A DNA stretch of 64,000 nucleotides from Eukaryota sp. TZLM1-RC (lineage: Eukaryota; Protista; Metamonada: BaSk clade): NCBI GenBank assembly GCA_040285825.1, contig JAUPSS010000008.1, positions 1,286,996 to 1,350,995 of the forward strand. The letters run 5' to 3'. Numbering within the stretch: the stretch's first letter is position 1; the number at the start of each line of letters is the position of its first letter. The position numbers and the translations under genes are program-made. The notes under the pieces are model-generated. The model did no database searches. It had not been told where the DNA came from and was given only the letters and a program-made list of their open reading frames with translations. Positions 97-60,900 of the stretch are shown here, piece by piece.

Positions 97-1570
97 ACGT
101 AGCAACCTTTTTAAAATAAACAGGACATTTTGCTGAAGTGAAAGCCTCATTAATCATCAATACTTCAAATCCATTTTAGTTCAGAAATTGAATCCATCCA
201 ATTCCTCCAGTAGGTCTGTGATGTTTCAAATTCTTGGAACCTTTTTTTACCATAATCACCCATTAGAATGAAAGTGTCTTTGGGATTGCGAAACTGCTGA
301 ACAAGGCTTTTTAACAACCAACTTTCAATCTTTTGCTTGTGAATAAAAGCTTGCAATTTATGAATGCTCCACAAGTCAAGACTGTAAAAGTCAATTGTCA
401 AAAAGACTTGCCGAAGATTGGCAACCGCAAAGTTGGAAAAATCTATAAAAGATGCTGAATTGGATTCAGCAATTCAGCAAACGCGGACAATTCGATGTTT
501 GTATCTTCAATTGTCATTTCGTTAGACTCTATCATTTGGTTCCTGTCGTAATCTACCTCAGTGTACTTTGTAGCCCATCGTTTTGGTTTTCCATTCATCC
601 TACTTTTCAAAGACCAGGACATCTGAGTCATTCTCAACCATTTGAATTTCTTGTCTTGATTCATCACCCGACTATTTCTTTGCTGTTCAGTTTCATGTTC
701 AGGTACCATGGCTAATTCTTGATCCGTTTTTTTACCCCCAAAATACAATAAATCACGTTTTCCAGGATCACAAACAACAATTTGTTTGTCTTGAAAAGTA
801 TCAACATCAACATCATCAATATAAAAATCAGAAATACTAGCCTTGTTGTCTCGCTTACATTTCTGACCTTGTAAATCCCGACGAACAAATTCCACTGCAA
901 TATAAAATCCATCTGTGGATAATGTTGTTGAATTTATAAATCTTTTGGTTGAACATTGGTTGGTTTAAATCTAGAATATTAGGCCAAAAGTCAGATTGCT
1001 CAGGTGGTTTGAATTTCGTAATTTGGGCTAGTGTATTGAACATTTTCAGTGTCTGTGTAGATGATAAATCATCAATTAATGTTTGGTTAACAATTCTCCA
1101 TAATGTTCTTGTATCAATAGGAAAATATCCAGGGCCTACAGTGGTTGAAACAGAAAGAAATATGATAATGTTTTCTCTCTTTCTACTGGAGATTTATTGA
1201 GCAATTGTAATTGCTGGTTTTAAGAATACTTCATGATCTTTTTCAACAGCGTCTGCAAGAAACTCTATATCCACTGGAAACATGATGTAAACTAAATTCT
1301 CGCCAGTGACCAAACTCTCAATTTGACAAATAATTGGTTCAATAAGACCTTCAAATATGTATCTAAGTTCATTATTTGTTGTATCATATTGTTCACATAA
1401 ATCGAAAAATTCATCATTCAGAACGTCTGCAGTATTTTCAGGATGATGAAATAAAGAACTCAAGCAATCTCTATCATCTAAAAACAAGTTATTGAATTGA
1501 CGAAGCCTAAATCTATATAGTGAAATAATTGTAGATAATGGCGTTGAGTAGCCACAGAATACAAAAATAT
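97..1570 (-). pseudogene. Fanzor1 (TnpB-like RuvC nuclease) family F1, copy 1: central/C-terminal part, frameshifted, truncated after the RuvC-II motif
   Basis: Joined frames give GYFPIDTRTL, KFNNIIH(T)DG, IVVCDPGKRDLLY (RuvC-I D), ILMGDYG and LMINEAFTSAKCP (RuvC-II E plus Zn-finger start). Homologous to 44600-46845(+). Confidence 0.85.
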
Positions 1571-7492: not shown

Positions 7493-7520
7493 TTTTAATT
7501 AACGAAACGGGAGAAGGTAG

Positions 7521-10659: not shown

Positions 10660-10660
10660 C

Positions 10661-12234
10661 AAAGGTAGTTCTTAAAGTATAAACTCCCTCACCATAAACA
10701 CAGTTTTCAAAATCCTCTGAAAATGCACTTCTTGGTTTTACCATTGTTTCCCCATCATACTCAGCTGAAATATAACGAATTTTGGCCATTAATGATTCAC
10801 ATAATTGGGCAGATATTCATGGTGGTATACAATTACGTTGAAAACGAGACTGTAAATACAGCTTTAAGCAACATGTAGTATGAATTCACAATTGTTGAAA
10901 TATTGAAGCAGTTTCTCTCAATTTGAGTATCACATCTGAGTGTTTAACCATTGAGTTGACGGTTGCTCGAATGGTTTTATAAGATGGTAAAATGAACTTA
11001 TCTTTTTGAAACACTACAAAAAGTTCGAGACATAATACACAAGCATGGAGCCCATATTGAATCAAATTTTGCCTCAGGGGAGAAGTAGCTCAACAATCAG
11101 TTGGTAAAATATGGGTAAATTCCTGGTGAAACTTCATTTTCTTTTCATTTATCATTTTATAAACCAGATTGCCTAAGCCATGTCGATAGGGGATTTTAAT
11201 TTATTTCTTGGCAAATACCAGAGTATCTAAAAGATAAAAGCCATTTTCCCTGATGACAACTTCTCTCCATCTTGGTGAAAGTTGATTGAGTTCATCCACC
11301 ATTGGATCACTTGAAACAGTAGAAAATGGTAAATTCAAATCATTGAATATATTTTTCAATATTTGTAAATCAAATTTGATTAAATTGTGATTCAATAAGC
11401 AATGAGTTTGATAATTGCCATTAATGTTTGAAAATCTACGAAGCAAAGTTTCCTCAATAGAAAATGATTCTGCATGAACATTAATATTAATTTTAGGTAA
11501 AGATCTAATCTGGGAACTCATCTTCAATAACAACGAATATTTGCTTTCGAAAAAGTAATTATGGCGGTCAAACCTACCAATAAAAATGGAAATTAAAAAC
11601 ACCTTTTGATTAAAAAAAACTTTTTGATCTGAAATCCACTAACCCATTTGCTCATCAATTTCTTTTCAAAAGATTTGCACTTATCTTGTCTCTTTCTGTT
11701 GATGATCTCGTCAGGAGGGAGAAATTAGCCATCATGATTTTGGTAAAGATGACCATCCTGATAGGTTTCAAAATCAAAGCACATAACAGTGAAAAGATTT
11801 TGATTTGGGGTCATTGATTTGAATTGAATCAAAGAATCAGGGTTGAAGCCACTAAGACTTGGCTCAATTTTTCTGACCATTCTCGGATTCAATGGTTTTT
11901 TTGTCAAAATCTTCCTGTTCTGAATATTCAACATTGTATTCTCAATACAAATTTCTTGGTTCAGTGCTTTTTGTTGTTTTTTTCGCTTACGCTTTGATGT
12001 TGGTTGGTCAAAAATCGCTTTTCTAAAAATTTTTGATGGAGGCGTTGATTTAAAATTCAATCTTCTCTTTTTGGGACCAGTATTTGTTTTAACATCTCCA
12101 TCCATTGTTAAATCAACAGTAAATGGTTTTGTTGGAAGAAGATGTTGGCAGCTACTGGAATGAAAAGATAAATTATAAACATAATCATCAAACTCAATAT
12201 TATCAAAATAACAATTCAAGACACAACATCCCAT
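10661..12234 (-). pseudogene. F1 element copy 1, 5' half: leader - 2A-like peptide - DEDDh exonuclease - Fanzor1 N-terminus
   Basis: DLTMDGDVKTNTGP (12073-12117); ExoI CFDFET, ExoII NHNLIKFDL, LLDTLVFAK, ExoIII HILPTD. The same frame continues into YKTIRATVNSM...HTTCCLKLYL, a Fanzor1 N-terminal pattern. Confidence 0.75.
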
Positions 12235-12413
12235 ATCTAAAGTGCAAGTACCTTAATCAAAAAAAAGCAACAAAATCAAAACCACCAAGATAACAATTCA
12301 AAACAAAACATAAACAAGAAAAACATCCCGTATCTAAGGTGATTAGCACAATGGCTGATTCAACAGCACCCATATCATGATTCACATTATGACTAAAAAA
12401 ATGCAATACTTTA

Positions 12414-12630
12414 CCCCCACGGAAGGATCAGAACGACGATTCCGATAGGAAATCGAGGCTCTGACCTTTCGTTTATTCCTGTAAAGCAGGATGACTGTTC
12501 CCAACTGAGGAGTTCGGGAGGAAGTACTCTGCTGCTCTGTGAAGAACAGGTTAAAGGAGGAGGTGGGAATCGGGTCCGTAACCTCGTCATCTTGTTTCTC
12601 GTTTCGCTGCAATGAATGGGAAGAGTCAAG
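12414..12630. ncRNA. Candidate structured RNA (unassigned)
   Basis: GC-richer island with nested stems GAAGG/CCTTT, TCAGA/TCTGA, CGATT/AATCG, TCCTG/CAGGA, TTCCCA/TGGGAA. Confidence 0.3.
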
Positions 12631-13779
12631 TTGATGTCGCTGTCTGACACGATGTCTGACATGCTGATTGCAATTGTAAATTGATTGCTGCTTTCGACCA
12701 TGGTATCAAATGCCTATCCAATGTATTTCTATTAATGGTCAGCAGCATCAGCTCGATTTACCTTTCAACTGTTACTGTTACCAAAGTCTCCCACTCTTCT
12801 TCTTTACTTGTTTCCATTTCTAAAAAATACCGCCAAATCACATCATCATACATCTCCAATCTGCAAAGTTCTGTCGACAAATTGATCATGCTTTAGAAGG
12901 TCAATGTTGACAATTTCAGTACACAATCATGATAGGACTGTTCTATGCTTCTATAATAAGTGTTTATGTGCTTCTAGTTCCATAGAAGTAGTGTTCACAT
13001 TTTCTGTATCAGTTAGTCCACTGTGGATCATTACTGGATGGAATATTGTTTGAAGGATGACGCTCAATAATCCTGGATCAGGATTCCTGACCATCGCCAC
13101 CAGACTATTAAACTTCAACAAATTTACAAAACACGAATAATCATATTCATTCGTCGTCGTCGGAAGTTTGGGGATATAATTGTTCTGATTCAGTCACGAA
13201 ATTGCGATGAGAAGTATAATCACATCCTATGGATGTTTGAGTAAATCTTTCACTTCAATATATCATGAATGATACAGGAATATAGTATGTTAAAATATTG
13301 CAAAATTATTGGGTTCAATTCTGTGTCCAACATGAAATGGACACAGAAATGTTCTGTTATGCACTGATTAATCAACTATTACTCAGGAGTAAAATCATTC
13401 AAACAATCCTAAGAATTACAATGAGGGAAATATTTTGATAATAAAGCCATTTTTCCTCATCGACTCGATATATTCATAATGTGTCAAGTACAATCATCAT
13501 TATTCAATTTTACATTGAACCCAAACAATATGAATGTTGATCATCGTTAAGTTTGATCTGTTTCCAAGACTCGTCACTTTTGCACTTAACTCTACATTGA
13601 CTGTGTTACTTAATGCAGCAATTTTGACTGAAGAAACAATTCTCTCACTTTTACTCTATTAAGTGATCAGACAAACATGTTTGCGTGCCAATACAGAATT
13701 TTCAATGTATGATGTTTCACACTTTCCAATTGCATTATTTTTACCATGACCAAAATGATGTTATTGATTCAATTTGGAT

Positions 13780-17542: not shown

Positions 17543-17574
17543 TTGAAATGCATACTTTCTTCAAACATCATTCA

Positions 17575-28205: not shown

Positions 28206-28391
28206 CTTTCCTTGAGAATTTCAATGTAGCTGTGAAGGAAAGGACTGGAAGATTTACATTCATTTTCTTCTTTTGGTCGTTTTTCAGAATTTTTAGTAAT
28301 TAACTGTTTTTGATGTAGGAGATGCAGGTTTTGAGGATGTGGAGCTTTTGATGTACATTTGATGATTTATTTACGTTATTTGATAAATAAG
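28206..28391 (-). repeat. Right arm of the inverted repeat (partner 22738-22990)
   Basis: Direct alignment by eye. Confidence 0.8.
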
Positions 28392-28482
28392 TATAAGATT
28401 TCATTGTTTGAAATACATATGTTCAACTAGAATGTCCCGGAAAATATCATTTGATCAATTAAGAATGTTTTGAATAAAGACC

Positions 28483-28780
28483 ATGTTTAAAAACGTAACT
28501 TCCGTCTAGTGCTGCTGGATGACTATAGAACAAGTTGTCGATGTCATGCATGTGTACTCGAGGGAAAAGCAGGTGAAAATGTAAAGAAGCATCGAGTACC
28601 TAACTAAAGACCTTACAGGAGAGCAAAGACTCCAGCGGTCCTTAGACATGGATTAATCATTTGCAAGAAGTGTGGATGTCTATAGAATCGTAATGTCAAT
28701 GATGTTCTTAATATAATTCATGTTGTGGATCAGTAGTTTAAAGGAAATGAAAGGCCTCAAGTTTTGATAAGATCTACATT
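28483..28780 (+). pseudogene. Fanzor1 family F3, C-terminal remnant (not in the ORF track)
   Basis: One frame reads LVLLDDYRTSCRCHAC...PN*RPYR...RHGLIICKKCGCL*NRNVNDVLNI...GNERPQVL, matching Fanzor1 DE-RTS-CxxC...HGLLxC..C..WNRD..N..ERP. Confidence 0.85.
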
Positions 28781-34510: not shown

Positions 34511-35344
34511 GTTCGGACAACGTCGAGATATGATTACTTGATATCAAATCTACCATTTATTTTTTTTTGGAATCAATCAATTGTGATTACTAGGAATCAA
34601 ATCTAATAATCCTTTCCTTTAGTTAAAACAAAAACACTGGATAGACATTCTTCTCAAACAACGGTGGGACTCGGATATGGAGTCCTTGTGATGAATATGG
34701 TATTTTCCAGGTATTAATGATAATTATGCTGCACTTTGTTGTACCTTCTCGATCAGCTACAAAAGCTTCCGGAAACATACTGTTGTCTTTAAATATGTAT
34801 TGGATTGTTTGATTTTAATTTTTGTTATTTTTAAGTTTATAAAAACTAAAAAAAGAAAACGCAATTACTTGACAAATTATCAGTGATAAAGTGAAAACTG
34901 ATAATAAGAAACAAGCAACAATACGCCCAATATAAAGACTCTGAAATTTTGGTAGAAACACATCTTCATAATGTCCAAGTTATAATAACCTAGCAAATGT
35001 ATTTCCTGATGTTGAGAATCCTAGAGAATGGATGAGAGAAAAGTATCCTACTGTGAAATACTATACTTTGATAAGATGTAGATCTGATGTTTGTAGAGAA
35101 GGGTGTGATGGAAAGGACAGCATGTGCATACAACGTAGGGTGTATCAACTTCATGACGATGGTGATAGTCATCCTTATTTCTCTTAATTATAGACTTTTA
35201 CTACAGTGAATCTGTGACGTTTTTGAAATTTTTCCATACCAATGAGCGCAGAATAACAATTTCCTAACTGAAAACTAAGGATTATGAAAAATCATTTATA
35301 AAATTAACCTAAAAAATGACGTGTCCCTCAGTGAGCACAACACA

Positions 35345-35699: not shown

Positions 35700-37222
35700 T
35701 CAGTCAACAGGCAAAACATCAGTAAATTGGCCATAAAGGTTAATTTTCTTCTCAATTATCATCTTATAAGCTAGATTGTTCAAACTATATCCATATTGAA
35801 TTTTAATGAAAGTTTTGGCAAAACAAAAGTATCCAACATATAAAATCCATTTTCTTTAACGACAACATCTTTCCATCTAGGTGAAAGCTAATAAAGTACA
35901 TTCATCGTTGGATCAACTGTAACTGTTGGAAATTGTACATTAACATAATTGGATCTATTTTTTCAAGAAACCTGTAAATCTAACTGGATTAACTTGTTAT
36001 TGAGAAAACAATGTGGATCATAATTACCAATAAGTTCAGAAAATCTATGAAAATAGGTCTTTTTGTGAATGGACATTTCTGTATGGATATCGAAATCAAT
36101 GTTAGATAATCTGCTAATTTGAAGACTCATTCTCAACATAAATAAATATTTACTTTCCAAGAAAATTAGGATAATGAAACCTTCCAACAACATCTTGTAT
36201 TGAAAGCAATTTTGAATTGAAATCCATTCATCCATTTCTTCATCAGCGTTTTTGAAAAGAATTGCACCTTCTTTCCTGACGTTATCAATAGTCTTATCAG
36301 GTTTGACAAAATGGTTCTCATTTTTTTGTAAAGTTGACCAAGTTGATTTGTTTCAAGATCAAAGCACATCACAACAAGGAGCCTTTTGATTGGCAGTCTT
36401 TAATTTGAACTGGACTAAAGGCTCAGGCTTGGAACCACTATGACTTGGCCCATTCTTTTTTACCATACTTGGTTTCAACTGTTTCTTTATCAAAATTTTC
36501 CTGCTGTCCTCATTCAACAATGTATTTTTAAAACAAATTTTGCAGTTTAGTGCTTTTTGATGATTTTTCCGCTGTTGCTTTGGTAACTGTTGGTCGGAAG
36601 TCTCTTATCTAAACATTTCTGATGGATGACTTGCTTAACTGTCAGATTTTCTCTGGTTGGGACTACAAGATACACTTTGAAAATCATGATTCCTTATTGT
36701 TTCACTAAACTCATTGGGGCGTATTGTAATAATTGCTTCATAGATTTGTTTTTTCAATTCTGTAGTATTTAGCCCAACAGTGATTTCGGGTCCTGACATT
36801 ATCAGAGACAAATATGCCTACATTTGAATTGATTAACGAAAATTCTGAAAATAGTGCAGAACATATAATCCTTAGTCGTGAGCAGTTTGTCGGTCTCCTA
36901 CCCCGATTGCAACGGTTCCAATATCATGCACTATCAAAATACTGTCCAAATTTTGAAAAATTTTAGACAAAAGAGACTCTGTGATGATTTCGTCAGAAGA
37001 TAACGAGTAATCCAATTGAGGGTTTAAATATATACATTCTTTGTTCACAACATCAATAATTGCTAAGGCTCCATGTCATCCATTCTTGTATTGTTGACCT
37101 AGGGCATCATTCAAAGGTTTGATGATAAATCCATTCTCTGAAATTTTTTCAATCAAATGCTCATAAGAGTTGAAGATGATCATTGATTCCGTAGCTTCAA
37201 AGCTAATGTAAATGATATTCAA
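35700..37222 (-). pseudogene. F1 element copy 2: Ulp1-like protease plus DEDD exonuclease part, truncated on both sides
   Basis: Near-identical reverse complement of 42842-44360. Confidence 0.8.
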
Positions 37223-41397: not shown

Positions 41398-42082
41398 GTT
41401 TTAAGTTTTTATTTTCCACAACTGTACAGACACTTTTGTCTCGAAGAAAATAGCCACCATGACATCAATTTTGGTTCTAATGTTAAATACAATGTCATTA
41501 ATATAAAGATCATCAAAACCATTTTGGTACCATTAAAGGTCTAGCAAATTTCTCAACAATATCGTGATTAATTTTCAACTTCATTGTTTAAATTGCTTTG
41601 GCAGAGAACAACCAATCTGGTGTTGAAACTATCATCAGCATCAGTTTTTGGGATCAAATGGGTAAGATCTCTACATAGTGAAGCATAAAAACTCCTAAAC
41701 TTGGGCTCCACAAAGCAGTTGCATAATCATCCAAAAATGTTGAGAATTGCTGCTGATTGAAAGACTTTGTGTTTTTCAACTGTTTACTAAAAATCTGCCT
41801 AAATTCAGCACTTATTTTGTTCTGATTCAAATAAGAAACCTTGTTTAAGAGACCCTGTAATATTTAGTGACTTTTAATAATAAATCTTTTTCTCACTCGC
41901 TTTTCTGCTCATTGATATTATAACGATATAGTATTAGCGTTAAGGTAACATCACTTCAGACATGGGTTGTGTCTATTGTTTTCATTGTATTGATATGGGT
42001 TCTTAGATATGTACACTGTTTATAAGTTCTCATTGGAATCTAGTAGCTTCAAAAATCTCCTATCAACAAACCAATTTTCTGT

Positions 42083-42680
42083 GAGAAACCAATTATATGC
42101 CATGTGCAAAAGTTTCAATATAGAGGCATTTATTGAGCCACTAGTACGTAAGCTGTCTTCAGATCAAACTGATGATTCCTTTGGTAAAAGAAGGGCAGAT
42201 TTAGTAGCTCCAGGGATCGATGGTGTTCTCAATGTTGTAGATGTTGTCTCAGTTGATGTTTGCAAAAATTCTGCTGCTCGTTTAGTGTATTCCGCTGATT
42301 CGCCGTTATCTAACGCCGAAAAAAAGAAGATAAATAAATATGAAGAACCTTTGGCACAGTTAGGTAGAGTGGAACATGTGAAATATCAGTTTGTGCCGTT
42401 TGCAATTTCTCTTTTTGGCAATATTGGACCTTCAGGGTTGCACTTTTTTGAAATTTTAAAAAAAGTGATTCTGGTAAAACAATGAACTCCACTTTCTGGT
42501 AAACAGAATTGTTTTTTGCATTTTCAAGTCTATTCCAACAATGATTTCAAAGGCACTTTTAGCTATTGGTGTAGAATATGAACGTAATGCTGTGAGTAGG
42601 TTCAGTAATAGTGACGCTTGTTTGGAGGATATTGAATTCTAGATGGGTTTTTTATCTCAATAAATATTCCAGTTAAAAAA
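42083..42680 (+). mobile_element. 5'-truncated RLE non-LTR insertion, family R1, with 10-bp TSD AATTTTCTGT
   Basis: RLE motif RRAD...VVDV...AEKKKINKY; AATAAA plus A-tail; TSD at 42073-42082 and 42681-42690. Confidence 0.9.
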
Positions 42681-44978
42681 AATTTTCTGTTGATTTAACA
42701 ATGGATGGAGACGTTGAGTCTAACCCTGTTCATGTCGATATCTATTCTGCTTATTTAGACAGTCTAAAACCAGGAATACGGATTACTGATGCTATGATGT
42801 ATTTCTGGGCTGAATGACATGCTTATAATAACTTGGATACCAATATCATTTACATTAGCTTTGCAGGTACGGAATCAATGATCATCTTCAACTTTTATGA
42901 GCATTTGATTGAAAAAATTTCAGAGAATGGATTTATCATCAAACCTTTGAATGATGCCCTAAGTCAACAATACGGGAATGGATCACATGGAGCTTTAGCC
43001 ATTATTGATGTTGTGAACAAAGAATGTATATATTTAAACCCTCAATTGGGTTACTCGTTATCTTCTGACGAAATCATCACAGAGTCTCTTTTGTCTAAAA
43101 TTTTTCAAAATTTGGACAGTATTTTGATAGTGCATGATATTGGAACCGTTGCAATCGGGGTAGGAGACCGACAAACTCCTCACGACTAAGGATTATATGT
43201 TCTGCACTATTTTCAGAATTTTCATTTATCAATTCAAATGAAGGCATATTAGTCTCTTAATGTCAGGATTCAAAATCACTGTTGGGATAAATAATACAGA
43301 ATTGAAAAAACAAATCTATGAAGCAATTATTACAATACGCCCCAATGAGTTTAGTGAAACAATAAGGAATCATGGTTTTCAAAGTGTATCTTGTAGTCCC
43401 AACCAGAGAAAATCTCATAGTTAAGCAACTCATCCATCAGCAGTGTTTAGATAAGAGACTTCCGACCAACAGTTACCAAAGCAACAGCGGAAAAATCATC
43501 AAAAAGCACTAAACTGCAAAATTTGTTTTAAAAATATAATGTTGAATGATGACAGCAGGAAAATTTTGATAAAGAAACAGTTGAAACCAAGTATGGTAAA
43601 AAAATGGGCCAAGTCATAGTGGTTCCAAGCCTGAGTCTTTAGTCCAGTTCAAATTAAAGACTGCCAATCACAAAGCTCCTTGTTGTGATGTGCTTTGATG
43701 TTGAAACAAATCAACTTGGTCAACTTTACAAAAATATTGAGAACCATTTTGTCAAACCTGATAAGACTATTGATAACGTCAGAAAAGAAGGTGCAATTCT
43801 TTTCAAAAAAACGCTGATGAAGAAATGGATGAATGGATTTCAGTTCAAAATTGCTTTTAATACCAGGTGTTGTTGGAAGGTTTGACTGTCCTAATTTTCT
43901 CGGAAAGTAAATATTCATTTATGTTGAGAATGAGTCTTCAAATTAGCAGATTATCTAACATTGATTTTGATATCCATACAGAAATGTCCATTCACGAAAA
44001 GACCTATTTTCATAGATTTTCTAAACTTATTGGTAATTATGATCCACATTGTTTTCTCAATAACAATTTAATCCAGTTTGATTTACAGGTTTCTTGAAAA
44101 AATAGATCCAATTATGTTAATGTACAATTTCCAACAGTTACAGTTGATCCAACGATGAATGTACTTTATCAGCTTTCACCTAGATGGAAGGATGTTGTCG
44201 TTAAAGAAAATGGATTTAATCTGTTAGATACTTTTGTTTTGCCAAAAGTTTCATTAAAATTCAATATGTGTATGGTTTGAACAATCTTGCTTATAAGACG
44301 ATAAATGAGAAGAAAATTAACCTTCATGGCCAATTTACTGATGTTTTGCCTGTGGACTGTCTGGTCACTGCTTCACTTCGACAAAATTTAATTCAATTAA
44401 GGCTTCATGACTGAATCATTTCAAACTTTTTCTTTTAATTCAAAAAGCTAAGATTATTTTGCCATCTAATTCAAACTATTCGTGCAACTGTAAACTCAAT
44501 GATGAAGCATTTCAATGTTGTATTGAAACTGAAAAAAACGGCTTTGAAGTCCCAACAATTACAAATACACACTACCCGTTGCTTAAAACTAAAATCTCCT
44601 ATAGTCTTTTAACACCATTTACTTGTCAAATTGAGAATTTAGTCACGACTGAAAATCTGCTTGATGATAAATTTTCAATGTATGTACACTTTCTTGCATA
44701 TGCAGCTGAAAGGATCCTCAGATATTCATAAAACAAACAATTACGATTGCGCATTATGTTGCCAGTAGAGAGAGGAAACCTTATCACGTTACCCTTGTAT
44801 CAACCAATGTAGGCCCATAATATGACCAATTGACACAACAACAATGTGGAAAATTATTAAACGAACAATGATGGACGATCTGTTGCCTAAACAGAGTTTA
44901 AAAATGGTTATTACACAAGATCAAGTTTATAGATTCAAACCACGTGCACAACTGGACTTTTGGTCCAATATTATCGAT

Positions 44979-45810
44979 CTTGAAGACAGTTGCTCAAGTT
45001 GCCTAATCTCCGAAATTCCCAACATTTATGGCCTTCTACTGAATGATCACCAATGAACCACTGCAATGAGAATGAGATGTTTTCTATGGCCTTGTTTTTT
45101 ACCAAATGATTTAATTTGTCGCTGCAAGAGTGTTGTTGGGCTTTCCCATATTTTAAACTGTAAGTATTTTATAACTTATCGCTCAATTGTTCATGACTCA
45201 GTTCGTGATCAATTATATGCCATGTGCAAAAGTTTCAATATAGAGGCATTTATTGAGCCATTAGTACGTAAGCTGTCTTCAGATTAAACTGATGATTCCT
45301 TTGGTGAAAAAAGGGCAGATTTATTAGCTCCAAGGATCGATGGTGTTCTCAATGTTGTAGATGTTGTCTCAGTTGATGTTTGCAAAAATTCTGCTGCTCG
45401 TTTAGTGTATTCCGCTAATTCGCCGTTAGCTAACGCCGAAAAAAAGAAGATAAAAAAATATGAAGAACCTTTGGCACAGTTAGGTAGAATGGAAGATGTG
45501 AAATATCAGTTTGTGCCTTTTGCAATTTCTCTTCTTGGCAATATTGGACCTTCAGGGTTGCACTTTTTTGAAAAGTTCAAAAAAGTGTTACTGAATAGGT
45601 CTGGTAAAATAATGAATTCCACTTTCTGGTTAAATAGAATTGTTTTTTGCATTTTCAAGTCTATTCCAACAATGATTTCAAAGGCACTTTTAGCAATTGG
45701 TGTAGAATATGAACGTAATGCTGTGAGTAGGTTTAGTAATAGTGACGCTTGTTTGGAGGATATTGAATTCTAGATGGGTTTTTTATCTCAATAAATATTC
45801 CAGTTAAAAA
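44979..45810 (+). mobile_element. 5'-truncated RLE non-LTR insertion, family R1, with 12-bp TSD AATATTATCGAT
   Basis: CRC...HILNC, HDSVRD, RAD...AEKKK; TSD at 44967-44978 and 45811-45822. Confidence 0.9.
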
Positions 45811-45824
45811 AATATTATCGATTT

Positions 45825-45963
45825 TATTTATTGAATTTGCACACTTAATTAAATTAACTCATAACTAATGGGACGACTATCGTTGAACCAAGATTTCCTC
45901 TACAAAATCTTGATCTGCTTGCTGTCTAGCTAAAGCTTCTCTTATTCGATTGAAAAATCGAGG
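45825..45963 (-). mobile_element. 139-bp 3'-end insertion of non-LTR family R2, with 12-bp TSD TATTATCGATTT
   Basis: Reverse complement of 15403-15541; TSD at 45813-45824 and 45964-45975. Confidence 0.88.
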
Positions 45964-47068
45964 TATTATCGATTTAAACCAAATCAAATCAATTTGTTCA
46001 AACAACAGATTTATAAATTCAACAACATTATGCATACAGAAGGATTTAATATTACAGTGGAATTTGTTTATCGGATTTTGGAAGGTCCGAATTGTAAGCC
46101 AGACAACAAGGCTAGTATTTGTGATTAATATATTGATGATGATGATGTTGATACTTTTCAAGACAAACGAATTGTTGTTTGTGATCCTGGAAAACTTGAC
46201 TTATTGTATTTTGGCAGTAAAAAACCGATCAAGAACTAGCCTGGTTCTTGAACATGAAACTGAACAGTAAAGAAGTAGTCAGGTGGTGAATCAAGACAAG
46301 AAATTCAAATGGTTGAGAATGACTCAGATGTCCTGGTCTTTGAAAAGTAGGATAAATGAAAAACAAAAACGATGGGCGACAAAGTATAGTGAGGTAGATT
46401 ACGACGGGAACCAAATGATGGAGTCTCACGAAATGACAATCGGAAATGAAAACACCGGATTATCCACGTTTACTGCCAATTCAGCAACTTTTATAGATTT
46501 TTCCAACTTTGTGGTTGCCAAACTTCGGCAAGTTTTATTTTGACATTTTACTTTTACAGTCTTGACATGTGGAGCAATCATAAAATGCAAGTTTTTATTC
46601 ACAAACAAAACACTGAAAGTTGGTTGTTAAAAAGCCTTGTTCAGCAGTTTGGCAACACAAAAGACACTTTAATACTAATGGGTGATTATGGTAAAGAAGG
46701 TTCCAGGAAATTGAAACATCAGAAACCTACTCGTGGCATTGGATGGATTCAATTTCTGAAAAGAAATGGATTTGAAGTATTGATGATTAATGAGGCTTTC
46801 ACTGCAACAAAATGTCCTGTTTGTTTTGAAAAAATTGCTGCGTTTTTAAGTGTATCCAATACCAGATTCTATAAGGGAGAGAATTTCCAATTACTACTTG
46901 TCACGTTTTATTAGCTTGTAATAGTGAGAGTTGCAAACTCAGTAACAAAGTTTCAACAAAGTCTTTCATTACAAATAAGGTGGCTTGTCTGGCTTGTTGA
47001 ATATGTTTGCATTTGCTGAAACAAGAATAATTGGTAAAGAAAGGCCTAATTATTTGAGCATTAGATAG

Positions 47069-47181
47069 TTTTTGTAATACCTACACACGAAAATTGATCT
47101 TGTACTTATGGGGATTTTTTCCACAACAGTTATAACCCAGTAAATGTATTTCATAAAATACTAAAAGGGACCTTTTTTAAA
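47069..47181 (+). ncRNA. Candidate omegaRNA of the F1 Fanzor element
   Basis: Directly after the Fanzor stop; short hairpins GTATTT-cata-AAATAC and AAAAG-ggac-CTTTT. Confidence 0.4.
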
Positions 47182-48941: not shown

Positions 48942-51900
48942 TTACACAGTAAAAGACAATGTGACAGCTATTGCGGCAAATAGACAGAGATAACGGTCAA
49001 TTTTCTTCAAAAACAAACCCATTACTAAAAATGAAATGACCTTTAATTTCACAAAATAGAAATAAGGAATTAAAATGTCAGTAAGATATATAGAGACAAT
49101 AAAAATAACTCCAACGAAATGAGTGGATTTAAAGCATAATAGCGAAATAAACAAAATGATAGCAATGGATAGACCTAAATAAACGAAAAAACTTAGATCA
49201 AACTGAGGCAAAAGAGAGAAAAAACTTAAGAAATAAAGCATAAAAGAGTACTCAGCAATTTCAAAACGACAAAGCTTGAGTTTTTTCCCATATAATATAA
49301 ACAAAACAACGTAAAATATTAAGTAAGTTAGCAAGAAAATAATCAAAATACTTGTTTGACATGAAAAACGTGGGAAAATTAAACAACAACGGGAAACAAT
49401 AATAGAAAGTAATCCAGTAAGACCATAATAAGACAGCTCAGCAACCACAAGGAAGACAACAAAAATAGAAAATAATGGTTTTTTGAGAAATTTATTCAAA
49501 ACCTTTTGTGGAACATTCCTTTTAAATAGAGGAGCAGTTCCTATCATGTCAATATTAAATTTTTTAATCCCCCTATAATAAAACTCGGCAAAAATAAAAA
49601 CAACTGTCAAACTCAAAACAGTTGTAATAGCGATTAAATAATTGGTTGTTGATCGTTCAATACATTCAGTTCCAAAAGCATCAAATCCTTCCTCACAATC
49701 TAAACAATGCTCCCCTTTATGACCTTGAATACAAGTATTATTTCTGCATAAATGGCGGAGAACACATTCAAAGGGTAGAAACTGACTTGAAAAAAGAAAA
49801 CCATCTTGGAAAGAATTGATGTGACCGTATTCGCAAGTAGTTTTGTCAGGACATCTGACACATTCTCCATCAATTTCCACAAAATTCCGTTGACAAACAC
49901 AATCATCAAGACTAGAAGACCCTTCATTAAAAGTGATTCTTCCCAGTGGACATTGCTGGCACTGTTGCTCAGTTCTGGGGTCTGAAAAAGTGTTTCGTGG
50001 ACATTTATCACATGATTGAGCGGAATTGAGTGCATACCCAGGAGCACATATACAATCTCCATTATTAAAAACCATTGGAAAAACACAGTCAACAGAAGTC
50101 AGCTGAATGGAATAACTGAGATCATCTAAAGAGAAAATCAAATCAAAATCAATTAACGGGGGAGTAACAACTTCTAACCCCGACTGTGTTTTGAATATTT
50201 GGAATTCCTCAAAATTATGACTAGAAGAGCTCACTGACACATCATCCACCATAAATGTGTAGGTATAAAAAGACAAGGACTTGTACAAAAACATTGTAAA
50301 TTCCAAGTAAAACTCAGTACATGTGAAAGTACCAAAATGAGCATTATGACAAGGCGAAATTTTCAGCAAATCTACAGTAAAAAATGTACGAACCTGCTGG
50401 TGTAGCTCAAAAAGCCACGAACCAACCTGAGTTGATCCAGAAACAGCATAGTAAACGTCCTGAATTCCCAAAGATTGAAATGACTTGATGAAAATTAAAC
50501 ACTGAATAGCTGTACAGTTTTCTACATCAATATCGAGTGAAGAGTGTACGATGGACACGTCAATTCCTTTGCAGGAAGTTACAAAACCAAAACATCTTTA
50601 CATTCAACATCAACGGTAATGGATTCATTGGTAAATGTTATTTCAAAGGTGAAGAAATCCAATGTTACAGGAGCTTGGACATCGTAATTTAAGGTAAGAG
50701 ATTGTTCAGGAAAGTAACAATCTTCAGCAAACACAAGCGTTTCAAAAGAAACATTACTAATTTCTTCTGATATTCCCAATGAAACATTTGATAAAAATGA
50801 AGAGTAATCTGAGAAGAAGTAGTTATTGTAAACAATAACAGAATTAATATCAACATGATTACCAGTTGAAGTAACACCTAATTCTGCATTGTGAGGAACA
50901 AGACAAACGTAAGGGTTAAACCCATTCACTTCAATTTCTAATAGGTAGACATCTTGAGCAGCTAACAATTCCAATGATTCCACTACTACCAACTCTGAAA
51001 ACAAAGTAATACACTGTGAAGCAAACCCAAATCCATTTGGGATCGAATGACAAGACCAATCTGAATATAAATGTAAAATTTCAAGTGGGGAAGTTGTTCT
51101 ACTAGCTGAGGTACAGTCAGAATCAACAGTGATTGTAATATATCTAACGTCGAATTCACCATCAAAATTGATTGATAATGTAGAATTTGATGGGAAATAG
51201 ATCGAACAATCATTAAGAGGTCCAGAACAACAGCGAACACCATCAACTATTGCCTTTCCATCACCGTAATAGTGAGAAAAACCTAAATTTGAAGGTCCAA
51301 GCTTAACCAAGGATGGATCATTAGAAACATAACAATCATCACTGAAAACAGGTTCCACATCAACTATTATGGAATCCAAAACATTTGAAGAAGAGTCAAC
51401 GATAGCAAGGTTTGTGGTTGGTTGAATTCTGACAGTTTGAGCATCCTTGCAACAAATTTTGTCATTGTCTACAAACGTCAAGAAATAAACATCATCAATA
51501 ATGCACCTTAACCCAAAACCAGAAACATAATAGTCAACATACATGCAAAAATCCACTGAAGAAATAGGCGACAGGGATTCACCCATAGATTCTAGTGATA
51601 AACGATGTACAGTAAAATTAGACACTTTGACTTCATAGTCTACAAATAAAGGGGAATTCCAATAAAGTTCAAAAAGAAAACTTCCTGAACTATTTACCCG
51701 AGGAAGCTCCAACGAAACAACTGTTGATGAATCTTGATAAGAGATACTGTGAATAGTGGCAGGGAGGTTTAAACCAATAAACCATTGAAAACTACCTTGA
51801 GATACGAAATTTTCAACAGAAACATCAACAGTAACATTTTCATAGTAGAAGAGCTCAAGAGGACTAATGACCTGAAATATTGACTCAGGCAAAACGTAGA

Positions 51901-54900
51901 CCTGAAAATCTTTGGTCATGGTATTATCTCCTTCACTTACACTTAAGCTTAGCTCAAAGTTCCCAGTAGCAGAAAACTCAACCAAAACACTCAATTCAGA
52001 GTTTATAATTGAAGTATCTCCCACAATACACAATGGGGAATGGCAATCTAAGTTAAAAACACCACTCAAACCATCAGGAACTGGAATAGAGACTATTGAT
52101 CTCACATTTACAAAGAATAGAGTAGGTTGTATCTCAAAAGAGTCAATGCAATCTACCAAAACAAGACGGGAATTAGAACCATCTCCTACTTGAATAGTGA
52201 CTGGGCATTCATTAAGTGTTTCAAGGTTGAGAAAGTTGAAGCCAGGGTTAATTAGAAAATTCAATGTAGAAATTTCTATTTGAACACTTGATGGAGAGTC
52301 AAAGAAAATATGAGCTCTACTATTGGTGAAGAGAGTGGGCAAATCAAGCGGATCCAAAATTTCAATAGTGATATCTGTTTCAGAACTACTTAGGATACTA
52401 CGAGTTGATAGTTGATATGAACCAATCAAAAGCTCTGTTACACAAGCAGATACAGTAATTGCATCAACTTTACTAGTTGTAATAGAAAAATCTGAAATGG
52501 CAAAAGAGTTGTCGAAATTGAGATAATTATTGAAATTAGTTCCAGTAATTTCAACACAGGTTGTTGTGGTAGGGCCAAAATACATTACCCTAGAAGGTGA
52601 GATGGAGATAACTTCTGCAATATCAGGAAAGTTTGAAATAGAAAAACAAGAAATAGATACATTTGAACACAATTCCAGATCAGCTTTTGTGGTAAAAGGA
52701 AGAAATGTTACTTCAGAATAGTTTGAATGTCCAATATAACTAACAATTCGCATTGAGGAATCTTCCTTAACCTGGGGATAGAGAGTCGTAAAGTCTAGTT
52801 CCCCTTCAACAGTAGCGAGTAAAACATTGCATTCGGTATCTACAAAGCAAACTCCTTCAATGGGAAAAGCTTCAATATTGGCGATTCTAATGGAAAAAGA
52901 CTCATTAATAGTTGGAATAAAAGAAACTGTACAATCAACAATTTCAGTTAATTCATCCAATTGATAGATACCAATAGAAATACGGTCAAAATGATTACGA
53001 CTAGGTTCAAAATACACCAAACCATCACTACAAATGACGTCAGCATGTTGTAAGCACCCACTTTCAAATAATTTACTAAAAGAATTTCCTTCTATGGTGA
53101 TCATACCACCAGAATTTGGCAAGATACTAGGAAACACCTTAAACGAAGGAGCAATCAATTCTACTTCAACAAAGTTACTAAATTGGTTTCCAATAACTAC
53201 TGCGACGTTTAACTTTGGGCTAGATGTACAAACAAATATTAACCGTAAAATTGCGTAACTAAAAGAAACAGTGAAAGGTTCAAAGTCAAATGAAGTATTC
53301 GATATATACAAATCAAAATGGAGTAAATCACCCAAATTAAACCCAGAAACCACAATATCAGATGAAAAGGGAACCAATGGTGGGGATAGTGAACTAATGA
53401 CTGGAATTTGATAACAAAACTCAAACTCGGTATTAGGTCTACTGGTAGGATAAAAAGTCACGTTATGACATCCAGAAAACAAAGGTACATCGAAAGTAAT
53501 AGAATAATGGTCAAAATCAACAGAATTCAAAGTAATGTTGAGCAAATCAACAGTAACGTAAATAGGGTGAAGAGAAGAACCAAAATTAACACCTGAAAAA
53601 ATAACAGGACCACCAATTGTTGGCGGTTTAGAGGATTCCATAATGGTAAAAGGACAAAGACTAAATTGAAACGAAGTCAATACAAATTGATTGTTAACAG
53701 TAAAATTGAACAAAATTGAGTTAAATTGTTCGTCAACACCCCAAATATTTGAGAGTAAGAGATCAAATTTTTGACCGTCTTTATAGAGATCAAAATGTTG
53801 AGTGCCAATCACTTCCACATCCAAGTAATCATTAACAGACCAAGCATAATCAAAAGGGATAATTATTCGACAATTCTCAGTTGGACAGCAGGAACTACCA
53901 TAGTTAATATCAACATCAAACACCTGCTCATCTTGAAATATATAAGGATCAGCTCCAGTAAACAAAGAATTTGACTCTGAAACATTGGAAATGACACACA
54001 ATTGACCAGTGTTAAAGTTAAAAGTACTTCCATCTGAAACTAATTCATCAATTAAGAGAAAGGGTTCAAGGTTACGAAAGCTAAATTCAGAGTTCAAAGC
54101 ATGCACCTGAACCATCGATACAATAGCAGGAACATCAGAAACAGTAAACTTTGAATTCTCACAATAGATGTTGTGAATGGAAAATAAGGAAGATTTAATT
54201 TCAATTAGTAGTGTAGAATTGTACAAATCAACAATTACAAGCTCAGTAATGGCAGAGAAAATATGTACAATGGAGGTGAAAACATTGATTGAATCAAAAG
54301 TAAATGTTGAAAAAGAGTCGAAAACTAACAAACCATTGTCAAGTGACAACATATTCAAAGGACTTGTCCAAAATCCACTAACGTAAACCTCTGCGTTTTC
54401 CATTAAAATCAATCCCAAATCGGAAGTGAGGTTTGAATTATGAAGAAAATAGGCAATTGAATTGATGAACATGAGGGCATCAGCTTCGAAAAACACAAAT
54501 GAATAAATAGTGAGTTCATTGGAAAATAGATTTGAGGAACCCTTGTTCAATGTGAGATCACCTTGCACATCCACAGTCCATTCAAAAACAGAATTATTAC
54601 ATGAAATAGAATTACGAAATAACAAACTATTGTCAAAGGAACCACTACTGAGAAAAGAAGCATTATTTAAATAACATGGCCCAAAAACTTCAACTGTTGA
54701 GTCAAAAGAACCAGAAACTTCAATTTCCATAAAACTGGCATTGTTGTTGAATTCAATTGAGGAAGAATCTAAATAAAAAGAACTCTGGGAAAAAATGACA
54801 TCTGGTTTGATTAAAAGTTTGTGTTGATCTCTAATTTGATTGATATAGTTAGTTTCACCATTAATCACATGACAGCTTTCAGTACATTTAGTTTGGGAAT

Positions 54901-57900
54901 TACCAGTAAAAGTTGTACCTGAAAAACTCAACTCTCCGACTATTAAAATTCCATTACCTTTTCGAGTTGATGAGAGGAGATAAACATCACTAAAAGTATA
55001 AATAGTATCTGAGTTTGTTAAATCCAAGTCTGAACTATCAAGAACAAAATCTGCAGAAATGATGAGATCATCCTCATAATTGAATTCAATATTACCATTA
55101 TTTGAACTGAAACCACTTAAAGAATCTAGCTTTGTATTGAAAAATGAAGCACTAGCTGTAGATTCAGAGTTAATAGTAAAACTACTTGCCTTTAAATCAC
55201 CATTATTAAAGGTAACAGATCCTTCTTGGAGTTCAATTGAGTCAATGTCAATACTTTCAAAAGTGTCATCATAGTCAAAAGTAACGTGACCAGTTTCTAT
55301 TTCTAGCGAGTCTAATGATTTAAATTCAGCACCATTAAAAGTTAATTCATTGTCAGTTTTAACAATAAAATCATCAGTATCCACCTTTGAACCAGAAGTA
55401 AACGTCAACTTTCCATGTGAGTGAGTGATGGAACCAATTCCTGTATAAGTACCTTCAATTGATAATTCAATAGGTTCCTGTAAAGTTAGCGTATTTGGAT
55501 GAACTTCAAGCTTGGAATTTTCGTTAAATGTATAAGAATCTCCTTTGAAAATAGCTTCACCACCATCTAAAACCTTTAAAGTTCCACCAATGGTATTATC
55601 TACATCTAATTCTAATTTACCATTTACATTAATAGTGCCTTGTAAATCAAATAAATCCTCAATTACCAAAATACCTTCTTCCTCTATATTAAGTGTACCC
55701 AATATTTGGAAATCTGTTTTGGATGAGGTTGAAACAATAAGTGTAGAATCGAGTTGGAAAACCAAATCTAACGGTAAAATAAATTGTCCATCTAATATTT
55801 CCAACCTAGCATTTCCAGAATTAATTTGACCTCCACTATTAAATGTAAACTTATGAAGGTCACTTATTTTGTTATTATTAAGGGAATGATCTAAAATTTG
55901 ACAATTTTCATTACAAATTGTTTCACCACTTTCAGCAAATTCACTATTGGCAATTGACAAACTCTTAGCTACCAAATTACCAGCACCATTTCTAGTAGAA
56001 TCTATTAATTTTACATCATCAAAGTTATAATTAACAGAATTTTTCAAAGTTAGCTCGGAATTTTCCAAGTCAACATCAAAAGCTATGTCAAAATCATCAT
56101 CATATTCCAAAGTTAAATGACCCTTTATGGACGTGAAACCACTTAAAGAATCTAGCTTTGTATTAAAAAATGAAGCACTAGCTGTAGATTCAGAGTTAAT
56201 AGTAAAACTACTTGCCTTTAAATCACCATTATTAAAGGTAACAGATCCTTCTTGGAGTTCAATTGAGTCAATGTCAATACTTTCAAAAGTGTCATCGTAA
56301 TCAAAAGTAACGTGACCAGTTTCTATTTCTAGCGAGTGTAATGATTTAAATTCAGCACCATCAAAAGTTAATTCATTGTCAGTTTTAACAATAAAATCAT
56401 CAGTATCCACCTTTGAACCAGATGTAAACGTCAACTTTCCATGTGAGTGAGTGATGGAACCAATTCCTGTATAAGTACCTTTAATTGTTAATTCAATAGG
56501 TTCCTGTAAAGATAGCGTATTTGGATGAACTTCAAGCTTGGAATTTTCGTTAAATGTATAAGAATCTCCTTTCAAAACAGCTTCACCACCATCTAAAACC
56601 TTTAAAGTTCCACCAATGGTATTATCTACATCTAATTCTAATTTACCATTTACATTGATAGTGCCTTGTAAATCAAATAAATTCTCAATTACCAAAATAC
56701 CTTCTTCCTCTATATTAAGTGTACCCAATATTTGGAAATCTGTTTTGGATGAGGTTGAAACAATAAGTGTAGAATCGAGTTGGAAAACCAAATCTAATGG
56801 TAAAATAAATTGTCCATCTAATATTTCCAACTTGGCATTTCCAGAACTAATTTGACCTCCACTATTAAATGTAAGCTTATGAGGTTCAGTTAATTTGTTA
56901 TTATTAGGGGAATGATCTAAAATTTGACAATTTTCATTACAAATTGTTTCACCACTTTCAGCAAATTCACTATTGGCAAATGACAAACTCTTAGCTACCA
57001 GTTTACCAGCACCATTTCTAGTAGAATCTACTAATTTTACATCATCAAAGTTATAATTAACAGAATTTTTCAAAGTTAGTTCGGAATTTTCCAAGTCAAC
57101 ATCAAAAGTTATGTCAAAATCATCATCATATTCCAAAGTTAAATGACCCTTTATGGACGTGAAGCCACTTAAACAATCTAGCTTTGTATTGAAAAATGAA
57201 GCACTAGCTGTAGATTCAGAGTTAATAGTAAAACTACTTGCCTTTAAATCACCATTATTAAAGGTAACAGATCCTTCTTGGAGTTCAATTGAGTCAATGT
57301 CAATACTTTTAAAAGTGTCATCATAGTCAAAAGTAACGTGACCAGTTTCTATTTCTAGCGAGTCTAATGATTTAAATTCAGCACCACTAAAAGTTAATTC
57401 ATTGTCAGTTTTAACAATAAAATCATCAGTATCCACCTTTGAACCAGAAGTAAACGTCAACTTTCCATGTGAGTGAGTGATGGAACCAATTCCTGTATAA
57501 GTACCTTCAATTGATAATTCAATAGGTTCCTGTAAAGTTAGCGTATTTGGATGAACTTCAAGCTTGGAATTTTCGTTAAATGTATAAGAATCTCCTTTGA
57601 AAATAGCTCCACCACCATCTGAAACCTTTAAAGTTCCACCAATGGTATTATCTACATCTAATTCTAATTTACCATTTACATTAATAGTGCCTTGTAAATC
57701 AAATAAATCCTCAATTACCAAAATACCTGCTTCCTCTATATTAAGTGTACCCAATATTTGGAAATCTGTTTTGGATGAGGTTGAAACAATGACTTTAGGG
57801 TTTGCAGAAATCAAACTCCCTTCCTTTAAAATAAAAGTAGCTGAATTAATTTGGAAGTAGAGAGGAGATTCAGAATCCATATTACCATTACCATCAAAAA

Positions 57901-60900
57901 TTAATTCGTGGGAATCTTTTACATTTATAATGTTAGTTTCACCATTGATCACATCGCAGCTTTCAGTACATTTAGTTTGGGAATTGCCAGTAAAAGTGGT
58001 ACCTGAAAAACTCAACTTTTCGACTATTAGCATTCCATTACCTTTTCGAGTTGATGAGAGAAGATAAACATCACTAAAAGTATAAATAGTATCTGAGTTT
58101 GTTAAATCCAAGTCTGAACTATCAAGAACAAAAGCTGCAGAAATGATGAGATCATCCTCATAATTAAATTCAATATTACCATTATTTGAACTGAAACCAG
58201 TTAAAGAATCTAGCTTTGTATTAAAAAATGAAGCACTAGCTGTAGATTCAGAGTTAATAGTAAAACTACTTGCCTTTAAATCACCATTATTAAAGGTAAC
58301 AGACCCTTCTTGGAGTTCAATTGAGTCAATGTCAATACTTTTAAAAGTGTCATCATAACCAAAAAGTAACGTGACCAGTTTCTATTTCTAGTGAGTCTAA
58401 TGATTTAAATTCAGCACCATTAAAAGTTAATTCATTGTCAGTTCTGACAATAAAATCTCCGGTATCAACCTTTGAACCAGAAGTAAACGTCAACTTTCCA
58501 TGTGAGTGAGTGATGGAACCAATTCCTGTATAAGTACCTTTAATTGTTAATTCAATAGGTTCCTGTAAAATTAGCGTATTTGGATGAACTTCAAGCTTGG
58601 AATTTTCGTTAAATGTATAGGAATCTCCTTTGAAATTAGCTTCACCACCATCTAAAACCTTTAAAGTTCCATCAATGGTATTATCTACATCTAATTCTAA
58701 TTTACCATTGACATTAATAGTGCCTTGTAAATCAAATAAATTCTCAATTACCAAAATACCTTCTTCCTCTATATTAAGTGTACCCAATATTTGGAAATCT
58801 GTTTTGGATGAGGTTGAAACAATGACTTTAGAGTCTGTAGAAATCAAACTCCCTTCCTTTAAAATAAAAGTAGCTGAATTAATTTGGAAGTAGAGAGGAG
58901 ATTCAGAATCCATATTACCATTACCATCAAAAATTAATTCGTGGGAATCTTTTACATTTATAATGTTAGTTTCACCATTGATCACATCGCAGTTTTCAGT
59001 ACATTTAGTTTGGGAATTACCAGTAAAAGTGGTACCTGAGAAACTCAACTTTTCGACTATTAGCATTCCATTACCTTTTCGAGTTGATGAGAGAAGATAA
59101 ACATCACTAAAAGTATAAATAGTATCTGAGTTTGTTAAATCCAAGTCTGAACTATCAAGAACAAAAGCTGCAGAAATGATGAGATCATCCTCATAATTAA
59201 ATTCAATATTACCATTATTTGAACTGAAACCAGTTAAAGAATCTAGCTTTGTATTAAAAAATGAAGCACTAGCTGTAGATTCAGAGTTAATAGTAAAACT
59301 ACTTGCCTTTAAATCACCATTATTAAAGGTAACAGATCCTTCTTGGAGTTCAATTGAGTCAATGTCAATACTTTCAAAAGTGTCATCGTAATCAAAAGTA
59401 ACGTGACCAGTTTCTATTTCTAGCGAGTGTAATGATTTAAATTCAGCACCATTAAAAGTTAATTCATTGTCAGTTCTGACAATAAAATCTCCGGTATCAA
59501 CCTTTGAACCAGAAGTAAACGTCAACTTTCCATGTGAGTGAGTGATGGAACCAATTCCTGTATAAGTACCTTTAATTGTTAATTCAATAGGTTCCTGTAA
59601 AATTAGCGTATTTGGATGAACTTCAAGCTTGGAATTTTCGTTAAATGTATAGGAATCTCCTTTGAAATTAGCTTCACCACCATCTAAAACCTTTAAAGTT
59701 CCATCAATGGTATTATCTACATCTAATTCTAATTTACCATTGACATTAATAGTGCCTTGTAAATCAAATAAATTCTCAATTACCAAAATACCTTCTTCCT
59801 CTATATTAAGTGTACCCAATATTTGGAAATCTGTTTTGGATGAGGTTGAAACAATGACTTTAGAGTCTGTAGAAATCAAACTCCCTTCCTTTTAAAAATA
59901 AAAAGTAGCTGAATTAATTTGGAAGTAGAGAGGAGATTCAGAATCCATATTACCATTACCATCAAAAATTAATTCGTGGGAATCTTTTTACATTTATAAT
60001 GTTAGTTTCACCATTGATCACATCGCAGTTTTCAGTACATTTAGTTTGGGAATTACCAGTAAAAAGTGGTACCTGAGAAACTCAACTTTTCGACTATTAG
60101 CATTCCATTACCTTTTCGAGTTGATGAGAGAAGATAAACATCACTAAAAGTATAAATAGTATCTGAGTTTGTTAAATCCAAGTCTGAACTATCAAGAACA
60201 AAAGCTGCAGAAATGATGAGATCATCCTCATAATTAAATTCAATATTACCATTATTTGAACTGAAACCAGTTAAAGAATCTAGCTTTGTATTAAAAATGA
60301 AGCACTAGCTGTAGATTCAGAGTTAATAGTAAAACTACTTGCCTTTTAAATCACCATTATTAAAGGTAACAGATCCTTCTTGGAGTTCAATTGAGTCAAT
60401 GTCAATACTTTCAAAAGTGTCATCGTAATCAAAAGTAACGTGACCAGTTTCTATTTCTAGCGAGTGTAATGATTTAAATTCAGCACCATTAAAAGTTAAT
60501 TCATTGTCAGTTCTGACAATAAAATCTCCGGTATCAACCTTTGAACCAGAAGTAAACGTCAACTTTCCATGTGAGTGAGTGATGGAACCAATTCCTGTAT
60601 AAGTACCTTTAATTGTTAATTCAATAGGTTCCTGTAAAATTAGCGTATTTGGATGAACTTCAAGCTTGGAATTTTCATTAAATGTATAGGAATCTCCTTT
60701 GAAATTAGCTTCACCACCATCTAAAACCTTTAAAGTTCCATCAATGGTATTATCTACATCTAATTCTAATTTACCATTGACATTAATAGTGCCTTGTAAA
60801 TCAAATAAATTCTCAATTACCAAAATACCTTCTTCCTCTATATTAAGTGTACCCAATATTTGGAAATCTGTTTTGGATGAGGTTGAAACAATGACTTTAG

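Follow-up and report, generated by a model that had tools for sequence, protein, structure and literature searches.

We found that a multi-copy element of Skoliomonas, a genus of soda-lake protists, encodes a natural fusion of a 3'-5' exonuclease to the RNA-guided nuclease Fanzor1, placed behind a 2A-like peptide. The reality of this fusion is supported by unbroken open reading frames (ORFs) in two species and by a partial gene model in a third. The element came to light in a 64,000-nucleotide (nt) stretch of contig JAUPSS010000008.1 (assembly GCA_040285825.1, Eukaryota sp. TZLM1-RC; positions 1,286,996 to 1,350,995; hereafter the window, numbered from its first letter) of Skoliomonas litria, a free-living metamonad whose genome is 55% repetitive (PMC11316075). 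By self-comparison, the window holds three copies of the element. All three are broken by stops and frameshifts and are dead; intact copies are under purifying selection elsewhere in Skoliomonas. The parts of the fusion follow the order leader, 2A-like peptide, optional Ulp1 protease, basic linker, exonuclease and Fanzor1.

The exonuclease-Fanzor1 fusion

The initial annotation, made from the window alone, had proposed a Fanzor-exonuclease fusion of roughly 1100-1300 amino acids (aa) and had suggested that an intact ORF be sought in a consensus of all genomic copies. Individual genes already have such frames. The exonuclease piece of copy 1, used as a query, returned four S. litria proteins, and the Fanzor part returned fusions in Skoliomonas sp. 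RCL and further ones in S. litria. Exonuclease through Fanzor lies in a single ORF in P0035 and P0051 (940 aa each) and P0048 (1571 aa), which span the size range of unbroken RCL frames (940-1571 aa), and in P0060 of S. litria (1195 aa), from which the ExoI motif is deleted. The fusion itself is thus borne out, and only its size was drawn too narrowly: frames of 1195 and 1571 aa are unbroken, and one spliced model reaches 1846 aa. Additional fusion proteins are P0078, P0093 and P0094; NCBI predicts a single short intron in each of the latter two, and over their last 960 codons the DNA reads without a break. At the S. litria locus L003, the stop-free 312-aa ORF P0016, one of the four proteins returned first, runs from ExoI through ExoIII into the Fanzor N-terminus, and the same frame continues downstream to the end of Fanzor with two stops in 1003 codons. 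The partial model P0082, from sp. GEMRC, has ExoII ahead of Fanzor. In P0035 the exonuclease ends at residue 238 and the alignment to SpuFz1 starts at residue 239; the exonuclease therefore sits directly on a full-length Fanzor1. Given unbroken ORFs in two species, we rejected an assembly artefact or chance adjacency.

Copy 1 had also been read as passing in one frame from exonuclease into Fanzor. This holds from ExoII onward and fails between ExoI and ExoII, where ExoI is followed by a stop (11725-11727) and a frameshift (near 11658). The two copy 1 stops between ExoII and the first Fanzor element are sense codons in L003/P0016, as had been claimed. In our tree, a single supported Skoliomonas clade (96/95) holds the fusions, along with three fragments for which the N-termini lay outside the data. 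Broken frames were read with X, and no comparison included L024, a contig from a human gut metagenome.

By its sequence, the exonuclease is the proofreading domain of a family-B DNA polymerase (PolB), of the DEDDy type and closest to Pol delta. The domain of P0035 matches PF03104 with 57.9 bits (E 1.3e-15; curated cut-off 23), Atlas gives the PolB-type DEDDy assignment a score of 0.94, and the best match in the Protein Data Bank (PDB) is yeast Pol delta (E 3.4e-6), to which ExoII is nearly identical and the ExoIII Tyr-x3-Asp aligns in register. ExoI (D-x-E), ExoII (N-x3-F-D) and ExoIII (Y-x3-D) are all present, in the order and spacing found in yeast Pol delta (PDB 3IAY); unlike that enzyme, the element has no polymerase domain, and Fanzor follows directly. 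The ExoII and ExoIII residues are invariant in every aligned row that covers them, ExoI is intact in the litria, RCL-A and RCL-B subfamilies, and the four acidic residues are kept across fused subfamilies that are only 31-53% identical to one another. The domain had been assigned to the DEDDh class (DnaQ/TREX/RNase T) on the strength of a His-x4-Asp taken as ExoIII. That His varies freely, the invariant Tyr-x3-Asp lies about 15 residues beyond it, and DEDDh families gave no match; the DEDDh reading is thereby ruled out.

Both the exonuclease and the Fanzor domain are under purifying selection. For the exonuclease, the ratio of nonsynonymous to synonymous substitution rates (dN/dS) was 0.08-0.17 among recent RCL-A copies (Fisher p 8.5e-4 to 1.6e-7, from three non-independent pairs), 0.35 in litria (p 0.012), 0.46 in RCL-B (p 0.11, not significant) and 0.25 between RCL-A and RCL-B. 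The Fanzor ratios were 0.08-0.27. As internal controls, the leader (0.71) and the linker (0.86) were near neutral, with Ulp1 intermediate (0.34).

The Fanzor part matches PpFz1, SpuFz1 and GtFz1 (phmmer 5e-24). An alignment-based model predicts the Fanzor1 fold with confidence (Foldseek E 8.6e-25 to SpuFz1), and Foldseek values are about 1e-24 for Fz1 structures versus 2e-5 or weaker for Cas12/TnpB. It shares with these Fanzor1 proteins the whole WED-REC-RuvC-TNB chain, the DPG motif at RuvC-I (with Leu for Pro in one copy, likely decaying) and the shifted RuvC-II Glu, six residues ahead of the zinc finger. It differs from them in the added N-terminal PolB exonuclease, optional Ulp1 protease(s) and 2A-like head. 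The RuvC-III residue, aligned to SpuFz1 D606, is Asn in the fused subfamilies, so that the triad reads D-E-N. It is Asp in the nearest unfused relatives outside Skoliomonas and Asn in F3, a sister family found in the window; the Asn thus predates the fusion. GtFz1, with the same Asn, cuts DNA, and the D606N variant of SpuFz1 is more active than wild type (PMC11423790). By analogy, the fused nuclease is probably active.

Two other decayed Fanzor families lie in the window. F3 occupies 27900-28780 (plus), carries the RuvC-III Asn and is sister to the fused clade. F2, at 17531-19300 (minus), has Asp at RuvC-III; at two other loci its right end adjoins the left-end region of the exonuclease element (L010) or lies 230 nt upstream of the element (L003).

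Front modules, ends and mobility

The canonical 2A-like motif, GD(V/I)ExNPGP, is found in P0060, P0055, P0092 and P0094 and is degenerate in window copies 1 and 3. The motif as defined in earlier work does not by itself prove ribosome skipping (PMC3708506). Behind it stand no protease (the copy 1 type), one Ulp1-like domain or two (P0094). The single domain comes in two unrelated versions in RCL-A and in a decayed one in copies 2 and 3. RCL Ulp1 domains match PF02902, down to E 5.7e-21, and have the His...Gln-x4/5-Asp-Cys-Gly order; the module of copy 3 is weak, scoring 12.1 bits against a hidden Markov model of four RCL domains versus 10.1 for the best of 300 shuffles. RCL-A copies that are 97% identical downstream are wholly different upstream, and the front modules are interchangeable. 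An N-terminal 2A-like motif also heads ORFs of the APE-type non-LTR (long terminal repeat) retrotransposons L1Tc and ingi (PMC3708506), but the Skoliomonas element has no reverse transcriptase, and its payload is an RNA-guided nuclease.

Beyond the stop codon, identity between copies extends for 52-59 nt and then stops at each of the 12 right ends examined. The litria and RCL-A right ends differ in sequence and fold into three hairpins; folding z scores range from -0.65 to -2.96, and covariation is modest and drawn from related sequences. Rfam held no match for this candidate omegaRNA. The sharp end and the hairpins fit an omegaRNA scaffold followed by a flank-derived guide, the arrangement of a structured 3' end and a variable guide common to Fanzor1 systems. 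In copy 3, the predicted guide would be the ~15-20 nt after 47123. In all 10 litria and RCL-A copies, C or T follows the terminal CCA of the right end. At five of the 12 loci a gene on the same strand has its annotated start codon 5-64 nt beyond the right end, so that a guide would match the 5' region of that gene; the genome is compact, and this proximity may be due to chance. At L011, 50 bp of right-end flank (10652-10701) recur as an exact repeat 150 nt downstream (10802-10851); the repeat also has the element's final four bases in common, which may point to the target site.

At the left, where the ends are uncertain, pairs of copies share 5' limits that bear hairpins, in three subfamilies with two copies each. 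Terminal inverted repeats (TIRs) were not found, which sets the element apart from Spu-1, and target duplications did not exceed chance, with a 2-bp duplication possible at L007 and L027. The TIRs and fixed-length target-site duplications of DDE cut-and-paste elements (Mariner, hAT, MuDR) were thus not seen. The initial annotation had reported no visible transposase, and none was present at any of the 12 loci. One candidate partner transposase, the ORF at 13746-15008, was rejected as a non-LTR reverse-transcriptase remnant; it belongs to a multi-copy non-LTR family whose remnant spans 13746-15542, and a truncated copy of that family lies 21 nt beyond the right end of the element at L006. With the Helitron2-type non-autonomous Fanzor1 elements CRe-1/2/3, the Skoliomonas element shares 3' ends that stay intact, 5' ends that often vary, a pyrimidine after the 3' end and, less certainly, terminal hairpins (PMC3627910). 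However, the 12 loci yielded no RepHel, asymmetric terminal repeats of 8-15 bp did not turn up in convincing form, and neither duplications of 7-19 bp nor a Helitron partner were found for the element; further, the CRe Fanzors were not reported as fusions (PMC3627910). Our best guess, and a tentative one, is that spread to new sites may depend on an HUH-type transposase acting in trans.

Copies in the window

Copies 1 and 3 had been described as collinear once insertions are removed. This is correct, and it extends to the partial copy 2 (35701-37219). The insertions had been called bounded by target-site duplications, which is so for the LINE (long interspersed element) insertions of copy 3, with duplications of 10-12 bp, but not for the nested Gypsy elements that split copy 1, where ~240 bp are missing. 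Fanzor resumes there at ~1554 rather than at 1570. Copy 1 is truncated ahead of RuvC-III and has no omegaRNA. Copy 3 carries a Ulp1-like module that copy 1 lacks and has lost ~665 bp of REC, so the two copies are different variants.

Features of the three element copies in the window, with right-end intervals at other loci (NLS, nuclear localisation signal)
Feature	Position	Strand	Remarks
Copy 1	12782-10660 plus 1554-97	minus	from self-comparison
Copy 1, 5' part	10660..12782	minus	leader repeats, ATG 12234, basic NLS-like stretch, exonuclease, Fanzor N-terminus from ~10985
Copy 1, degenerate 2A	12075-12114	minus	
Copy 1, exonuclease		minus	ExoI 11775/11769; ExoII 11386/11371; ExoIII Tyr 11056, Asp lost at 11044
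Copy 1, 3' part	97..1554	minus	Fanzor REC, RuvC-I (769), RuvC-II (148); 90% to L003 11347-12794
Copy 2	37219-35701	minus	from self-comparison; protease-like module, then exonuclease ending shortly ahead of ExoIII; 95% identity to copy 3
Copy 3	41962-47123	plus	from self-comparison
Copy 3, leader	41962..42082	plus	short, Cys/Phe-rich; 66 bp at 76-82% to copy 1, L004, L005, L006, L010
Nested non-LTR retrotransposon fragment	42083..42690	plus	5'-truncated, foreign to the element; 10-bp target duplication
Copy 3, 2A-like motif	42692..42733	plus	last two residues degenerate
Copy 3, Ulp1/C48-like protease module	42818..43220	plus	decayed; His kept, Cys position is a stop (43187-43189)
Copy 3, PolB-type DEDDy exonuclease	43688..44420	plus	frameshifted; ExoI Asp 43697, Glu 43703; ExoII Asn 44065, Asp 44080; ExoIII Asp 44409, Tyr lost at 44397
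Copy 3, Fanzor1 WED/REC part	44440..44978	plus	~665 bp deleted near 44587-44615
Two nested non-LTR fragments	44981..45975	plus	different families at one site, foreign to the element; three copies of a 12-bp duplication
Copy 3, Fanzor1 RuvC/TNB part	45995..47068	plus	frameshifted; RuvC-I Asp 46183, RuvC-II Glu 46792, zinc finger, RuvC-III Asn 46974; stop 47066-47068
Copy 3, candidate omegaRNA scaffold and right end	47061..47123	plus	decayed; conservation ends sharply here in 7 litria copies
Right end to start codon, other loci	L027 12875-12880; L010 9641-9668; L004 14777-14819; L007 12875-12917; L003 13065-13129		

The Gypsy block at 1555-10659 consists of a gag-pol element (1572-7492), which an NCBI model of 1964 aa joins, and an oppositely oriented gag-like element with short terminal repeats (7520-10660). 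In copy 3, both non-LTR families (44969-45975) share one 12-bp insertion site. Adjoining copy 2, a fragment at 34954-35115 (plus) derives from a further subfamily of the fused clade, similar to P0083 and P0085. Farther along, a tandem array of ~1035-bp units, 95-98% identical, occupies 54839-64000 and runs into a large minus-strand ORF (50579-58111).

Possible roles of the exonuclease

The reading that we favour, with slightly better than even confidence, is that the exonuclease trims off the single-stranded 3' tail of a Fanzor cut; this would block religation and free a primer for copying the element back. A selfish, transposase-free element would express a single polyprotein, and ribosome skipping at the 2A-like motif would probably release a nuclear protein made up of the optional Ulp1 protease, the basic linker, the exonuclease and Fanzor1. 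The omegaRNA would derive from the 3' end of the element, with transcription continuing into the flank; the guide would therefore match the vacant insertion site. Fanzor would cut this site ~14-21 nt past the insertion point, and the end on the side of the target-adjacent motif (TAM) would keep a short 3' tail of the non-target strand. Indeed, cleavage by the Fanzor1 enzymes SpuFz1 and GtFz1 falls 14-17 nt from the TAM on the non-target strand and 14-21 nt from it on the target strand (PMC10432273). As the element follows the TAM, this tail would be downstream flank that mismatches the donor. Single-stranded 3' ends of DNA are the preferred substrate of PolB exonucleases, and during break repair in yeast the proofreading activity of Pol delta clips off short 3' tails that lack homology. 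The tethered proofreading exonuclease may thus take off the tail, so that clean religation fails, and clear the non-homologous 3' bases that would halt a polymerase copying the element from the sister or homologue, as in the restorative homing model (PMC13565253). As to the resection of guided breaks suggested initially, a 3'-5' enzyme cannot perform the 5' resection that recombination needs.

Several observations weigh against tail trimming. Other Fanzors persist without an exonuclease, and homing has been demonstrated for TnpB, not for Fanzor. The TAM and the vacant site were not reconstructed, our searches giving nothing beyond chance. In the alignment-based model the exonuclease is poor, most of residues 1-246 having a pLDDT (predicted local distance difference test) below 50. 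No RNA of the element was seen, the only run located being DNA contigs. Finally, the P0060 frame is open though ExoI is missing, and the RCL-C gene models begin after ExoI.

Maturation of the omegaRNA, raised in the initial annotation, is an unlikely alternative in which the exonuclease would trim the 3' end of the read-through transcript and set the guide length. A guide that would derive from unbounded flank transcription speaks for it, as does the existence of DEDDy RNases (RNase D, Rrp6). However, every match of the exonuclease is to a DNA-polymerase domain, and unfused Fanzors in yeast already have guides of 11-21 nt; the PolB-type DEDDy family favours trimming of DNA 3' ends over maturation of omegaRNA. 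Equally doubtful is a role in widening breaks into deletions that destroy the target, be it a rival element, a virus or a vacant allele, in the manner of engineered TREX2 fusions. The chemistry would be the same as in tail trimming, the genome is 55% repeats with several Fanzor families, and engineered exonuclease fusions are reported to bias repair to deletions. Yet the guide would match the flank of the element itself, which often lies immediately ahead of a host start codon, so that scars would damage the host without any copying of the element.

Less probable still is a service to mobilisation: an HUH or other transposase acting in trans would generate single-stranded intermediates, the exonuclease would process them, and Fanzor would be only a tether. 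Fixed 3' ends, variable 5' ends, hairpins at both shared limits and the absence of TIRs resemble Helitron2-type Fanzor elements (PMC3627910), and DEDD accessory nucleases occur in other transposons; set against this, the 12 loci contain no transposase, and neither the asymmetric repeats nor the variable duplications of Helitron2 were found. That the Fanzor nuclease is dead or the exonuclease an inert passenger is very improbable: the RuvC-III Asp is indeed missing in every fused copy, but Asn is active in GtFz1 (PMC11423790), RuvC-I and RuvC-II are kept, and both domains have invariant catalytic residues under purifying selection.

Because every part of it is a known domain, we class the element as a variant of Fanzor1. 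The initial annotation knew of no description of its architecture, and the literature, including the main Fanzor papers, shows no natural Fanzor-exonuclease, Fanzor-Ulp1 or 2A-Fanzor fusion within our incomplete coverage. No fusion outside Skoliomonas appeared among 50% representatives (searched with a short divergent query), in word-based searches, on viral and metagenome contigs or in Atlas; this absence is weak evidence, since the same searches missed even ordinary PolB proteins. Genome engineers have deliberately built comparable proteins, such as Cas9-TREX2 and T5exo-Cas12f, in which an exonuclease is likewise tethered to an RNA-guided nuclease. The Skoliomonas fusions parallel these designs but are natural, PolB-type, 3'-5' and under long-term selection.

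A proofreading exonuclease kept catalytically complete, as judged by its motifs, across deep divergence suggests that end processing is the limiting step, and with the fusion a single mutation can test the homing model. Natural genes that are intact and have short, defined omegaRNA candidates, such as KAL0213088.1 and KAL0227444.1, are available for expression. A bolder conjecture, to which we give low probability, is that of a self-sufficient RNA-guided element that cuts, trims and copies: Fanzor would open the target, the proofreading domain would ready the 3' primer end, the SUMO protease would clear host silencing or repair marks, and host recombination would spread the element without a transposase. 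If true, this would be RNA-guided mobility of a kind new to eukaryotes, and it would supply a ready-made editor with a bias to templated repair.

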